This document shows, piece after piece, positions 38,931-64,000 of a DNA stretch of 64,000 bases (positions are counted from its first letter, which is position 1; each line of letters starts with the position of its first letter). This DNA comes from Podarcis muralis (Eukaryota), in NCBI RefSeq assembly GCF_964188315.1, contig NC_135668.1:23808001-23872000 (forward strand), given 5' to 3'. The position numbers and the translations under genes were made by a program. The notes below the pieces were generated by a model. It was not told where the DNA came from, did not search any database, and was given only the letters and a program-made list of their open reading frames with translations.

Positions 38931-39546
38931 AAACATTTGTGATTGTAACTTTGTTTTAAAACTCTTTTAAAGTATTTGCTGTTGTACACATGTCTTGTAA
39001 TACTTTTTCTAAAAAAAATTCTAGCCATTCTGTCTCTAGGAGTAGAAGAATGGACTATGATTCAATCAATAAATACGTCTGATAATGCAGAATTTAAACT
39101 GATAATTTGGGGGTTGTGCTTCACCAGTGGTGGGGAACCCTTTGCCGCCTAAGGGCTGCATTTCCTCCTGGGCAGCCTTCCACGGGCCATGTACCAGTGG
39201 TGGGCAGGGACAAAGGTTATAGTCATAGATGTAATTTCTTTTACCTTTGTACAGTAGACTAGCTTCTACACTCACACACTGCTCTCTAGCCCTTGTCCAG
39301 ATAAGCAAGAGGCGTTATCAGAATTCAAGCCAGGCAAAAATTACTCTAGGTGTGAAACTTGTCCCATGCGGGGGGATGTGGACTGGGGAGAGCTGGGGGG
39401 GGGGGCAGTTAGAGAGCCCCAGAGGACTGCATTCAGCTCCTGGGCCTGAGATTCCCCGCCCCTGTGCTGTGCCATTGTTTGGGTTGCGTTTATGCCTTAT
39501 AATGTGCCCATTATTTATGCTGCTTTGCTCTTTTTCCTCCTTGCAG

Positions 39547-39856
39547 TGTGTCCCAGCTCATGTGGCAAACATGCTTGTACTGACCAAAATGAATGTTGCC
39601 ACCCGGAGTGCTTGGGAAGCTGTACGGCCCCAAACAACAACTCGGCATGTGTGGCTTGTCGCAACTACTACCACGATGGGACCTGCGTCGCCACCTGCCC
39701 GCTCAACACGTACAAGTTTGAGGGTTGGCGCTGCATCACGAAGGAGGCCTGCTCCAAAGTGGCCTTGGAACACTTCGAATATGACAGCTTTGTGATTCAT
39801 GACGACGCGTGTGTGTCCGACTGTCCTCCTGGATTTGTGCGCAATGATACTCAAAG
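39547..39856 (+). CDS. IGF1R: IGF1R exon 3 (cysteine-rich region), 310 bp, phase 1 to phase 2
   Basis: cag|TGTGTCCC...CAAAG|gtaac. Translates [102 protein letters not shown]. Matches human IGF1R ([25 protein letters not shown]...) better than INSR or INSRR. One codon shorter than the 313-bp human exon. Confidence 0.97.
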
Positions 39857-40035
39857 GTAACACACACACAAACATTGCAAGTTGCTGTACTCTTTGGGAA
39901 ACAGAGTTGGAGAAAGGCTATTCAGACATGAAGGATATTGCAGTAGAGCATCGGTCCCATTTTCTAATATTCCATTAACAATGCAGTACCTCTTTTATTA
40001 TGGAAGTGTGGCTTTTTGACCAATGTACCAACTAT

Positions 40036-40189
40036 GGGACGCGGGTGGCGCTGTGGGTTAAACCACAGAGCCTAGGACTTGCCGATCAGAAGGTCGGCGG
40101 TTCGAATCCCCGTGACGGGGTGAGCTCCCGTTGCTCGGTCCCTGCTCCTGCCAACCTAGCAGTTTGAAAGCACGTCAAAGTGCAAGTAG

Positions 40190-40246
<57 letters not shown>

Positions 40247-40852
40247 TTTATTTATATCCCGCCCTCCCCAGCCGAAGCCGGGCTCAGGGTGGCTAACAAC
40301 AGTCAAATAGTCAAACAGTCAAATTCTAAAAACATTCTAAAAACATTTCATTATAAAAATTAATTAAAATCAAATTGTTGGCAACCGATTAGGCAAAATT
40401 CTGTGCAGGTTGCCAGAGGAGGGAGTCAGGCTGCGCCCTGACCAAAGGCCTGGTGGAACAACTCTGTCTTGCAGGCCCTGCGGAAAGATGTCAGGTCCCG
40501 CAGGGCCCTAGTCTCTTGTGACAGAGCATTCCACCAGATTGGAGCCGCAGCCGAGAAGGCCCTGGCTCTAGTTGAGGCCAGCCTAACCTCTCTGAGGCCT
40601 GGGACCTTAAGGATGTTTTTATTTAAAAAATAATAAATAGATAATAATAGATAAATAGGTACCGCTCCGGTGGGAAGGTAAACGGCGTTTCCGTGCACTG
40701 CTCTGGTTCGCCAGAAGCGGCTTAGTCATGCTGGCCACATGACCCGGAAGCTGTACGCCAGCTCCCTCGGCCAGTAATACGAGATGAGGATGAGCGCCAG
40801 AACCCCAGAGTCGTTCGTGACTGGACCTAATGGTCAGGGGTCCCTTTACCTT
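40036..40852 (+). mobile_element. Full-length Sauria-type SINE interrupted by an L2 insertion
   Basis: gggacgcgggtggcgctgtgggttaaacc...ggttcgaatcc head and ...gtccctttaccttt tail. 10-bp TSD TACCAACTAT at 40026-40035 and 40853-40862. Confidence 0.92.
40194..40647 (-). mobile_element. Young 5'-truncated L2 LINE with (ATT)n tail
   Basis: Open frame VPGLREVRLASTRARAFSAAAPIWWNALSQETRALRDLTSFRRACKTELFHQAFGQGAA* then 3' UTR and tail. TAGATAA is duplicated at 40187-40193 and 40648-40654. Confidence 0.88.
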
Positions 40853-41284
40853 TACCAACTATTTATGTGCGGACCAGGGGTGGCCCATCCCGTTTAGCTG
40901 CCTGAGGCGAAACAGAAAGGTGTCACCCTGTGCTTGCACTGCACACCCACACCCCTTGCCACCCCTCTCGAAGCCTCGCTTACTGGGGTTGCGCAGCTAC
41001 TGCTTCTGGGTTCTGACGAGGTCACATGACAGATTTTTGTCACAGACCTCTGAAGGTCTCTGTGATTTTGCAGGATTCTTGCGAGATCTCTCTGGGAGCC
41101 ACTGCAACCACTTGGGCAGTGGAGGTGGGCCTGGAGACACCACTTGAATTCTGCCACCTGAGACGGCTGTGTCAGCCCTCGTTGATGGGCAGGTGTGTGC
41201 ACAGAAACCAAACTTTTTTATTGCAGGAACATAACAGGGTTGGAGTAAGATGAGGGTATTTTGATATTTCCCTGGGAAAGAGGG

Positions 41285-41455
41285 TTTGACTGTTAAACCG
41301 CCTTAACGAACTTCAGCTCTCTGAGGAGGAGAAGGGGAGGGGACTCCTAACAACTATCAGCACCCTTAAAAACACTACAACTCCCAGGATTCTTTGGAGG
41401 AATCTATGACTGTTAAAAGCAATATAGTAGTGCTTTAAGTGTGTTGTGCCCATGA
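41285..41455. mobile_element. Harbinger-like MITE, right half
   Basis: ctcctaacaactatcagcacccttaa...actacaactcccaggattctttgg...tgactgttaaaagc. Confidence 0.6.
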
Positions 41456-42344
41456 GGCAAGTTGAACAATCCATGGACAGGTATGACATGGATCAACTTA
41501 CTGTGTGCAGACTACTTCCTCTGCATTGCAGTCAATGAGTAATGGAAATCTGTGTGAACTTGCCCCTAAATCCCTTTAGCATTGTAGCATCTGTTTCGTT
41601 TTTAAACCTTTGGCCAAAGAGCTTGGGTGACAGATTCCGGAGGGATGACCATGTTAGTCCGTTGCAGCAAAAAGAGACAGACTAACTTAATGGGTCAGAA
41701 GTGGGCCCAGAATCTTACTTTGTTGGGTGCAAGACAGATAAAACTTTGGCATTCTCATGAGTGGATGGTTACATAAATAAAGACAATCATTCCTCTTGAA
41801 CTTTTTTTTTTTTAAAAAAAAAGTTCTGTAGAGTGTTTGCCTTTATTTGTTCAGCGATTTCATTTTCTGTTGACATCTGACTTCTCATGTTTTTTATGTT
41901 AATTTATCCAAACAAACCTTCCTCTGACCCCCCTAGGAGTTCCTAGTTTATATACAGGTGCAAAGTACTGCTCTTTGCCCCTAATTTAGAAACCCAGTGT
42001 TTACTGGGAAAAGTTTTTTCCTTGCTGCCTCTGACTACTTGAGTTTTCAGGCGATTAAAAACACTCATAAAAAGCATATGCCTCTTTATCTGAGCCTCTG
42101 TGTGGTAATGGAGAAGATGGGAAGTGGTGAATTGAAAGCCAATGAAATTTGTAGTGTCCCCTCCTCCCTTCACCACTTGCCTTCCCATGATTAGCACTGA
42201 TAGCTGCAAAGGAAGGGGTGGTAATGATTGGTGTGTTTACTTTTAATGGTTTCTGGCATGCACCAACAGAGCCACGTACTGAGAGCGCTTGAAATAAGTG
42301 TGAGGATCAATCAATCATTGGGTTGTTGTTGTTTTTGATTATGT

Positions 42345-42500
42345 ATTCTGTGTTTCTATGTTATAACCTCCCTGAGACCTGCAGGTATAGGGTGGTATAC
42401 AAATTTAATAAATAAATAAATTTGTATGCTGCTTTTCCAAAGTTCAAACCATGCTCAAGGTGGCTTACAACATATAAAACATTACACAATTCCAAATGTA
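42345..42500. mobile_element. Tail-to-tail L2 3' ends
   Basis: cctgagacctgcaggtatagggtggtatacaaatttaataaataaataaa (+), then tttgtatgctgcttttcc...ctcaaggtggcttacaa (-). Confidence 0.5.
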
Positions 42501-43138
42501 GCAATAGTAGTCAGAAACAATAAACAAAACATCAAGTACACAACCAAATTGGACAGTTTCCACATAAACCATAAGATCTGAAATAAAAGTTACAAAAAAT
42601 TAACAGCAACAACACACCCACACCCCGCCACCCAGCAACGCTGCATCCTAAACAATGCCCCAGCCCAAGATTCTGTTCAGCAGCCTCAGCTTTTGTAGCT
42701 GGAGTCAGTCAGGGCCCCACCCTTCCAGGCCAGGTGGGAAAAGGCCTGCAAGGCAGGGAGCAGTTCTTCCAGGACTTACAGGCAGTGACTGGAAAAGTGC
42801 ATCTTATAGCCATGATAGCTATATTACCTTCATGACTAAAAACTGGCGGCTTACGAGAAGGTGACCCTCTATAAAGAGGAGAAAGATTGGAAGTTCTCAA
42901 ATATATGGACTTCTTGCCATATATTTGAATGTCCCACCACTTCCTCCTCCCCTTCCTCTCTCCTCCCTCATTAAAAGTGCACACAGAACATAATTGTTTT
43001 GATTTATTATGGTTTAACTTGTGTTGTTTGACTATTGTTTTGTTTTTCCGTCTTCTTGGGGAAGTTTAATTTAAAAAACCTATTGATTGAAAAATGGCAG
43101 GTTTTTGCTGATTGTTTGTTGCCCTTCTCTCCTGACAG

Positions 43139-43284
43139 CATGTTCTGCAGCCCTTGCGAAGGACCCTGCCCCAAGGTGTGCTCCTTTGAAAAGACGATAA
43201 CCATTGACTCTGTCACGTCGGCAGAGTTGTTACAAGGATGCACAGAAATCAAAGGGAGCCTCGTTATCAACATCCGCCGTGGAA
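43139..43284 (+). CDS. IGF1R: IGF1R exon 4 (end of CR, start of L2), 146 bp
   Basis: cctgacag|CATGTTC...CGTGGAA|gtaag. Translates [48 protein letters not shown]. Phases 2/1 fit exons 3 and 5. Confidence 0.97.
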
Positions 43285-43980
43285 GTAAGAAACAGTTTCT
43301 GTTCACTTGCTTGCTTGCTCATGTTTGTGTGTGTGTGTGTTTAATCACCATCACTCCTATTTTTCTAGAAAATGTAGGTGCGGGAACTCACCACGAGCTT
43401 CTCCCTTGCTCTCTTAGAATGGCAGTGGTGCCTACCTGAGAGGTGCCGGAACTGAGCTCCTGTGAGCTCTGGCTGAAAAAACACTACTATTGTTTGAGAA
43501 ACGTCTCCATTTTGGATACGTTACAAATAATGCAAGCTTCTTTTTTAAAAAAAGTTCCCTTTTTAATGGTTTATTTTTATTTTGTCCTGTTTCTTTATAA
43601 AAAGCAACAAGCTATGCAGAAGGATGGTAAAGTAGTCTTTTAAAAGAAATGGAATAATGCTTGCTTGGTAGAATGCAGGCCATTTGGGAGAGGTACTTGC
43701 TAAAGCAGGTATAGGGAGGGAGGGAGGAAAGGAAGCATCCTTTGCCTTCAAACAGTCAGCAGACCGCAGGCAAGTTGAGTCTTCTGTCCTCTCCATTGAC
43801 ATGGATTTCCCCCTTTCATCTCTGCATTACAACACCTCCTGCCTCACCAGCAGAGTTTCTCTAATAATTACAGGGACTTCCCGCCTTCCTCCATTGCATC
43901 AGTAAGGAAAATGAGAAGATTCCACTTGCCTGGAGTGCCTTAGCCAAATGGCCAGGGAGAATATTTAGCATTTCCATTTG

Positions 43981-59597: not shown

Positions 59598-61263
59598 GTA
59601 AAACAAAAACCCAAAATATTATGTCCAGTATTAGTCATATTCAGACATTTTCAAAATTCATGGAGGTGTCTTAACTCCATTAACTTTCAGAGGGTTTATT
59701 GTGAGTAAAACTCTGTTGAATACAACTGCGTGACAGCACTTGGTCCTGATAAATTATTTGCGCTTTCGAAGGATGGTATTGCTTTGACAGAGAGGGCTGT
59801 GTGCTTGGAAAACCAATCCACGATGCCTTCAGTGGGTAATATAAACTAACAATAAATCTCAAGTGTTTCGGCTTAATTAGGCTTTGGCTGCAAAACATAG
59901 ATACTAGGATGCAACTCAGATTTTGTCCTGCTGTGTCCCAGTGGGATTTGCTTATGAGTAAATGTGCATAGTAGCATCAGGCTATTAGTCAGTACTCTGC
60001 AATTTATATTGGAAGGGGAGGTGTTGCACAGGTTTTCCAGCAGATGGCCAGAAGATACGGTTTGTTGGTTTTTGCAACATCTCATCCAAGCTTTGTTTAA
60101 TTCAAAGATCCAGGGATTTTTGATATGAAAATGCAAAAACAAGGAGCAAAAATAGTCACTGTTGAATTTTAGAATCAGTTGCTTTAATGTGGCTTACCAG
60201 TACGAAGGCTGAATGCTACCAGGGCTGCAGTTTTTTCAGAAGTAAATACATTGCAGAATCAAAAGCTCTGGCCAGTTCATTCACACATATGCATAATTTG
60301 GTGCCCTTCTGTTGAACCTACATTGAAGTTTTGTAGAAGTTTGACCTGTGATGGCCAAGTCAGGACTTGGTGCTACAGTCAATGGGTGATGAATGAGCCT
60401 TCTCAGATTGTTATTTTTTATTTTATTAATTAATTCTTTTCAATACTTGGTATAGATATGGCATCCAACATCACAAACTCTCATAACTGACACTGAATAC
60501 ACAACATAAGGTAAAATAAAGGAGGCATAGGTTATATTATTATCAAACCAGTGACTAGAAATGCTTAGGAATTACATCTGAGCACGAGGGCCTTTGCAAA
60601 ATTGGAGTAAATAATTGACCCTCTTGCTTATTAACATAAACAATGAGAGGTGTTGCAGGTAGTGGGGGAAGATTTCTGCATTTTGGCTTCTCTGGCCTGT
60701 CTGTTGCGCTCTCTCAATTTCTCTGTCACAGCCAATCTGCAGATTCTGCTCCAGCAACCTCTTAGACTAATAAAATGTCTGTGGTACGTCCAGTGCTGAG
60801 CAGCTTCCGTAAGTGCAGTTACAACTAAGAAAACAATTCACTCTTTATATTGCACGTTTCACATTGTATCAGGCAATATTGACAGTAAAGCTAGTCCAGG
60901 GTGCATTGAAAAAAGTTGCACTATAGCTGAGACTTGCTGAAGAACTCCTCACAACACTTGTATGACTGGACATTCCCACCACATGTGGAAATAACCAACC
61001 AACCTTTGCAACCCTCGATATTGTTCAACTTGGCCAGTGTAAAATACCATTAGGTTAACTCATCATAGCTTCCCTAGTTTGGGATGATACATTTTTTAAG
61101 GAGATATATGCCATATATCATTCCACACATTCTATGCTATCAGGCCCAAGCTTCCCTAAGACTTGTCGGTGTGGTCCTTAGATTTCTGATGCCTCTGTGC
61201 TTCCTGAATTCTGGTTGAGAGAGGATAGAGGTTGTGTTGGCTAGGTGATGGGAAAGTGCTACA

Positions 61264-63389: not shown

Positions 63390-63670
63390 GTCTAAACCCA
63401 TAATAAATAAATAAGAATGTGCATGTTGGGTGCCATGTTGCCCTACATTTGTACTTTAGCTCTGGTGAATGAGCAAGGATATTATTTTATTATTATTTAT
63501 TAAATTTGTAGATCTGAGAGCGGTTCACAACATATCCTGCATGGAGAACGTTAACAATGGTTTTCTTCTCTGTAAATATAATCTCGTTCTGTTTCTGACT
63601 TTAGGAGGTGATAATCACCTTGCAGGAATTCTAATTTTCTTCTTTTCTTATGTCCCCCCGCCCCCCTTAG

Positions 63671-63838
63671 TACCATCTGTTCCTCTGGACGTCATTTCAG
63701 CTTCCAATTCTTCCTCTCAGCTGATTGTGAAATGGAACCCACCCACTTTCCCCAATGGCAACCTCTCCTACTACATTGTGCGGTGGCAACAGCAGCCTCA
63801 GGATAGTTACCTTTATAGGCACAACTACTGCTCCAAAG
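63671..63838 (+). CDS. IGF1R: IGF1R exon 9 (FnIII-2a, start of insert domain), 168 bp
   Basis: cccccttag|TACCATC...TCCAAAG|gtgag. Translates [55 protein letters not shown]. Confidence 0.98.
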
Positions 63839-64000
63839 GTGAGACCAAGGTTGAAATGCCCTTACACAATTTCAGGGTGCCTCCTCATCTTATCACTTTG
63901 AAAATTCCTAAGATTGCAAAGAGCAAGGATAGGGAAATCTTTTGCCACCGCCCCCCCTCCCCAAGTTGTGGGGTTACAACTCTCAACAGTCTTGAATGTT

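Follow-up and report, generated by a model that had tools for sequence, protein, structure and literature searches.

Among the closest described systems to the locus reported here are the human type 1 IGF receptor (IGF1R) and its alanine mutants. Alanine scanning of human IGF1R identified four residues in the cysteine-rich (CR) region, R240, F241, E242 and F251, and the associated losses in affinity for IGF-I are 2-fold for R240A, 6-fold for F241A, 4-fold for E242A and 2-fold for F251A, as compiled from Whittaker (2001) by Rentería et al. (2008; PMC2577065; Table 3). The earlier note on this DNA had named the same four residues as the outcome of alanine scanning, and the tabulated values bear this out. 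The effect of the F251A replacement is itself small, at approximately 2-fold. In the complex described by Li (2019; PMC6783537), Tyr31 of IGF-I is sandwiched between Pro5 in L1 and Pro256 in the CR region, and is ringed by Phe241, Phe251 and Ile255. When IGF-II is the bound ligand, both its C-domain and CR residues 258-265 are disordered (PMC7601145). The CR region of the insulin receptor has a homologous fold and places Phe at the equivalent of residue 251 (in …CVNFSFC… or …ISFSFC…) but takes no part in ligand binding (PMC12796670). In addition, a 2025 survey from the Chrudinová laboratory counts residue 251 as one of the ligand contacts "showing the highest variability", and reports that residue 240 is Lys in birds, reptiles, marsupials and platypus and Arg in placentals (PMC12796670).

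We analysed a 64-kb stretch of DNA from the wall lizard, referred to here as the window, in which the 310-nt segment at 39547-39856 on the forward strand is exon 3 of the orthologue of IGF1R, a class II receptor tyrosine kinase of the insulin receptor family. Splice sites, translation, a PDB match, Pfam and RNA reads all bear on this identification. A polypyrimidine tract with AG at 39545-39546 forms the acceptor and GT at 39857-39858 the donor, and the in-frame codons (39549-39854) specify 102 residues without a stop, corresponding to CR residues from approximately 184/185 to 287/288 of the mature human protein. When searched against all PDB chains with phmmer, residues 1-102 of the exon 3 peptide have their best match in residues 185-287 of mature human IGF1R (E 8e-41), whereas the paralogues IRR and IR are matched at 1.5e-24 and at about 1e-21 to 2.8e-22, respectively. 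The exon is therefore far closer to IGF1R than to the insulin receptor, the IGF1R match being better than that to IRR or IR by ~16 or more orders of magnitude. Moreover, the peptide carries the IGF1R-type motif TY[KR]FEGWRC rather than the IR motif YYHFQDWRC, the Furin-like cysteine-rich region of Pfam (PF00757) is found in it with an E-value of 5.4e-28, and 14 of 14 cysteine columns are invariant in an exon alignment of 25 sequences (A1).

Exon 4, which encodes the end of the CR region and the start of L2, lies at 43139-43284 on the same strand between AG at 43137-43138 and GT at 43285-43286; it is supported by tblastn and by RNA depth, and with its first base it finishes the AG|C Ser codon that is opened in exon 3. 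Searches of the window by tblastn with frog and capuchin IGF1R as queries place further colinear exons, covering L2 and parts of FnIII-1 and FnIII-2, between 49060 and 63852 on the forward strand (approximate bounds 49060-49203, 52639-52857, 55434-55571, 59360-59629 and 63577-63852), which brings the ordered IGF1R exons between 39547 and 63852 to seven. The L1, transmembrane and tyrosine-kinase parts of the receptor fall outside the 64-kb window, together with exon 2 and the exons that follow approximately exon 9. Exon 3 is the most diverged of the IGF1R exons in the window, showing 63% identity to the primate sequence versus 85-92% for the L2 exons. A Pro-to-Lys change relative to primate is also present in an FnIII-1 loop encoded by exon 7 (55434-55571).

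Alignment with the PDB sequence places Lys (AAG, 39714-39716) at the position of human Arg240 (query residue 56) and Ala (GCC, 39747-39749) at that of human Phe251 (query residue 67). The latter is the fifth residue inside the bracket Cys246-x5-Cys252, and this bracket occurs throughout the 25 aligned exon sequences and in approximately 300 full-length IGF1Rs. Because the bracket is invariant and fixes the alignment, the homology of position 251 is unambiguous. The intervening codons TTT GAG (39717-39722) preserve Phe241 and Glu242, which are invariant in 185 of 185 IGF1R sequences, with zero changes on the tree described below, and in alignment A1. The four-residue IGF-I-specific CR epitope is only half kept in the lizard, Phe241 and Glu242 being the same, residue 240 being a conservative and ancestral Lys, and residue 251 being Ala. 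The two replacements that the earlier note had read from the sequence are thus real, given the phmmer/PDB alignment, the invariant cysteines and the same-species reads.

These reads come from 24 sequencing runs, all of the same species as the window, that were compared with positions 39400-43400. Positions 39428-40058 are covered by DNA contigs of two independent studies, and the exon 3 differences among those listed number two, both of them synonymous: 39725 T>C (Gly243), seen in one DNA study and in 4 of 4 RNA reads, and 39806 C>T (Asp), seen in one DNA study. No change at codon 240 or codon 251 is among the differences listed in the same-species DNA or RNA. In a stranded RNA run, exons 3 and 4 are covered at low depth, and depth is zero in unique intron bins. 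Two parts of intron 3 (39936-40873 and 42348-42883) contain repeats of very high copy number, at which contig word depth reaches the millions and RNA reads are abundant. A tRNA-like head lies at approximately 40020-40100 and a simple repeat at approximately 40182-40257, and the repeats are probably SINE-type elements.

A codon alignment of four sauropsid sequences (lizard, cobra, the unlabelled squamate-like sequence P0005 and a bird), for which dS is saturated (>1.2), gives pairwise dN/dS values of 0.06-0.14. Exon 3 is expressed and under purifying selection, and so is not a pseudogene. Values of dN to the bird are similar for the lizard (0.168), the cobra (0.157) and P0005 (0.173), so that the lizard lineage shows no special acceleration. 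Codon 251 is GCC in the lizard, AAC in both the cobra and P0005, and TTC in the bird; every pair of distinct codons is two nucleotides apart, implying several successive replacements at this position within sauropsids.

The closest sequences that were found for the lizard exon are those of the cobra Naja naja (P0001, 82% identity) and P0005 from Logan run SRR31508491 (75%). Both resemble the lizard in lacking Phe251 and in having Lys240. They differ from it in that Asn251 (AAC) forms part of an Asn-Cys-Ser sequon and Pro256 is kept, whereas the lizard has Ala251 (GCC) and neither the sequon nor Pro256. This N-x-S glycosylation sequon, located on the contact surface for the IGF-I C-domain, occurs in L002:13745-14056 (Naja naja) and L001:1655-1966 (SRR31508491), with the window reading Ala-Cys-Ser at the same place. 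Two conserved non-coding intronic elements are also shared with these relatives. That at 41943-42073 is 77% identical over 132 nt to a segment of L001 downstream of its exon 3, and the one at 38232-38451 matches the Naja intron that precedes exon 3, with 76% identity over 231 nt. The 132-nt element suggests that the source of P0005 may be a lepidosaur.

The CR loop that corresponds approximately to human residues 253-265 is encoded at 39753-39788 on the forward strand. After Cys252 the birds have SKVPATETSEYER and the cobra has SRIPSSDLLGEYES; in these alignments the lizard loop is one residue shorter than that of the birds and is without Pro256, although it keeps three acidic residues and has Val at position 255. 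The absence of Pro256 in combination with Ala251, and perhaps with Val255, implies that the Tyr31 pocket is remodelled at two or three positions rather than at one. The human F251A mutant carries the same replacement at the homologous position of the same Cys246-x5-Cys252 module. Its 2-fold loss of IGF-I affinity results from that replacement alone, the rest of the receptor being human with Pro/Leu256 and Ile255, whereas the lizard protein combines Ala251 with Val255, the missing Pro256 and the shorter loop in an exon 3 sequence of which ~37% of residues differ from primate.

We collected 24 exon-sized relatives by a word-index search with the exon peptide, and labelled full-length receptors, almost all of them teleost, by two further searches. 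Full-length IGF1Rs from one frog, one capuchin and gar were added, and an exhaustive search of representatives places vertebrate full-length IGF1Rs in one 50% cluster (P0031). Naja is the only labelled squamate in this taxon sample, which is without labelled turtles, crocodilians or tuatara, and the lizard's own IGF1 lies outside the window. Among the exon-sized relatives, Asn251 is confined to Naja naja and P0005; Phe251 is present in one labelled bird, in two unlabelled bird-like sequences and in ten mammal-type sequences (only Saguinus being labelled), and in the other unlabelled sequences the residue is Phe, Met, Val, Thr or Leu. The 193 teleost sequences, which are counts of sequences rather than species and include many isoforms of one gene, have Leu (120), Met (27), Phe (23), Val (15), Thr (3), Glu (2) and His, Tyr or Ile (1 each). 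The earlier note had proposed that a non-aromatic residue 251 in most non-mammalian vertebrates would speak against a special meaning for the lizard change, and this is largely the pattern that is seen: ~88% of the teleost sequences lack an aromatic residue at 251, the frog Pelodytes has Glu there, and the cobra and P0005 have Asn. Birds and gar nevertheless keep Phe, as do mammals, the capuchin among them. Because insulin-receptor-type sequences also carry Phe at the equivalent place, Phe251 is probably ancestral to the family.

The lability of residue 251 is also evident from a FastTree phylogeny of 185 distinct IGF1R fragments in which the trait residue was masked. Counting the minimum number of changes for 103 exon-3 positions gives at least 29 for residue 251 (rank 13 of 103), 18 for residue 240, and 0 for residues 241 and 242. 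In our sample Lys240 is found not only in the lizard but in birds, the cobra, P0005 and most teleosts, so that, together with the published survey, Lys240 is the ancestral non-placental state and Arg240 is a placental novelty. The suggestion in the earlier note that R240K is a change in the lizard can be set aside on these grounds. Of the four, Phe241 and Glu242 alone are fixed across vertebrates, whereas residues 240 and 251 drift freely. Teleost IGF1Ra and IGF1Rb in which residue 251 is Leu, Met or Val are natural, functional receptors that lack an aromatic residue at this position and, like the lizard protein, keep Phe241 and Glu242. They differ from it in having large hydrophobic side chains at 251 and a loop of the type …VHLP…, rather than the small Ala and the different loop of the lizard. 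In substance, the variability of residue 251 and the presence of Lys240 were already known, and our results on these two points repeat those of the 2025 survey (PMC12796670).

We consider it probable, at roughly 70%, that the gene in the window is an ordinary, functional IGF1R, ligand binding itself being predicted, and that Ala251 is a tolerated, lineage-specific substitution at a weakly constrained, peripheral ligand contact in the CR region, which has already been reported to be more variable in reptiles. In mammals, Phe251 and the residues Phe241, Ile255 and Pro256 together make up the hydrophobic surroundings of Tyr31, a residue of the IGF-I C-domain. The lizard receptor, with Phe241, Glu242 and the three acidic loop residues in place but with Ala251, Val255 and no Pro256, would be expected to show at most a modest weakening of the contact between the CR region and the C-domain at Tyr31, of the order of the 2-fold loss in human F251A, with IGF-II little affected. 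Several observations count against a merely tolerated substitution. Compared with the Leu, Met, Val or Phe of nearly all other taxa, Ala, and likewise the Asn of the two other squamate-type sequences, is smaller or more polar, perhaps implying that squamates exceed the mere swapping of one hydrophobic residue for another. Pro256, the partner of Pro5 in sandwiching Tyr31, is absent from the lizard as well. Moreover, Li (2019; PMC6783537) describes IGF-I binding as "dramatically" lowered by F241A and F251A, and Passow (2019; PMC6406535), in a statement that cites McGaugh (2015), reports that positive selection in the insulin/TOR signalling network is greatest in squamates.

These points might be taken to favor an adaptive retuning of the receptor, as the earlier note had envisaged, in which loss of Phe251 and Pro256 lowers affinity for IGF-I relative to IGF-II and moves preference towards IGF2 where this ligand is expressed after birth. 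IGF-I makes use of the CR epitope whereas IGF-II does not; the C-domain and CR residues 258-265 are disordered in the IGF-II complex (PMC7601145); Phe251 is missing from three of three squamate-type sequences, and Pro256 from that of the lizard; and postnatal IGF2 expression has been reported in lizards and snakes (PMC9362763). We nevertheless regard such retuning as unlikely, given that the effect in the human receptor is only 2-fold, that residue 251 varies readily in many lineages for which no shift in ligand preference is known, and that the lizard lineage shows no acceleration in rate. Postnatal IGF2 is, in addition, reported for humans and other vertebrates (PMC9362763), with Phe251 kept in the present sample. 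Were Ala251 to have altered ligand preference, it would offer a natural handle on the partitioning of IGF1 and IGF2 in reptiles and on the evolution of growth and life history. A broader proposal, for which we see only a slim chance, is that the squamate clade has dismantled the aromatic/proline cradle for IGF-I Tyr31, by Asn251 and a sequon in the cobra and the squamate-like sequence, and by Ala251 and loss of Pro256 in the wall lizard. If so, IGF1R in these animals would discriminate less between IGF1 and IGF2, which would agree with the postnatal expression reported for IGF2 and with the rapid evolution of extracellular components of insulin/IGF signalling in squamates.

The other possibility raised in the earlier note is compensatory co-evolution, with Ala251 and the shortened 253-265 loop fitting a changed C-domain in the lizard's own IGF1. 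The variation reported for reptile IGF-I concerns only Arg37, which some reptiles replace by Ser or Pro, and position 40, where reptiles have His (PMC12796670). Tyr31, which packs against residue 251, and Arg36 are reported to be fully conserved across vertebrates, however (PMC12796670), and teleosts with Leu, Met or Val at 251 retain Tyr31 as well. The full conservation of Tyr31 means that there is no known change in the ligand for which Ala251 might compensate, and we judge co-evolution of this kind to be very improbable. That the Ala codon is an artefact, arising from an error in assembly or sequencing, from a pseudogene or from an exon of the paralogues INSR or INSRR, can be rejected with near certainty: the contigs from two independent DNA studies show synonymous differences alone among those listed, RNA reads cover the exon, the splice sites are intact in a series of seven colinear exons, dN/dS is ~0.1, and the phmmer margin over IRR and IR is ~16 or more orders of magnitude.

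Viewed as a tolerated substitution, Ala251 indicates that residues 240 and 251, which are "IGF-I-specific" in the human CR region, are not conserved determinants across vertebrates, whereas Phe241 and Glu242 are. The comparison also provides a calibration for reading receptor variants against human alanine-scan data. Several other replacements are seen in exon 3 at CR positions that are usually conserved, including Ala for Pro232 and Leu for Pro236. In addition, GCG (Ala) at 39807-39809 takes the place of Glu272 in the segment …FVIHxxEC…, Glu being at least 90% conserved at this position in the 25-sequence exon alignment.
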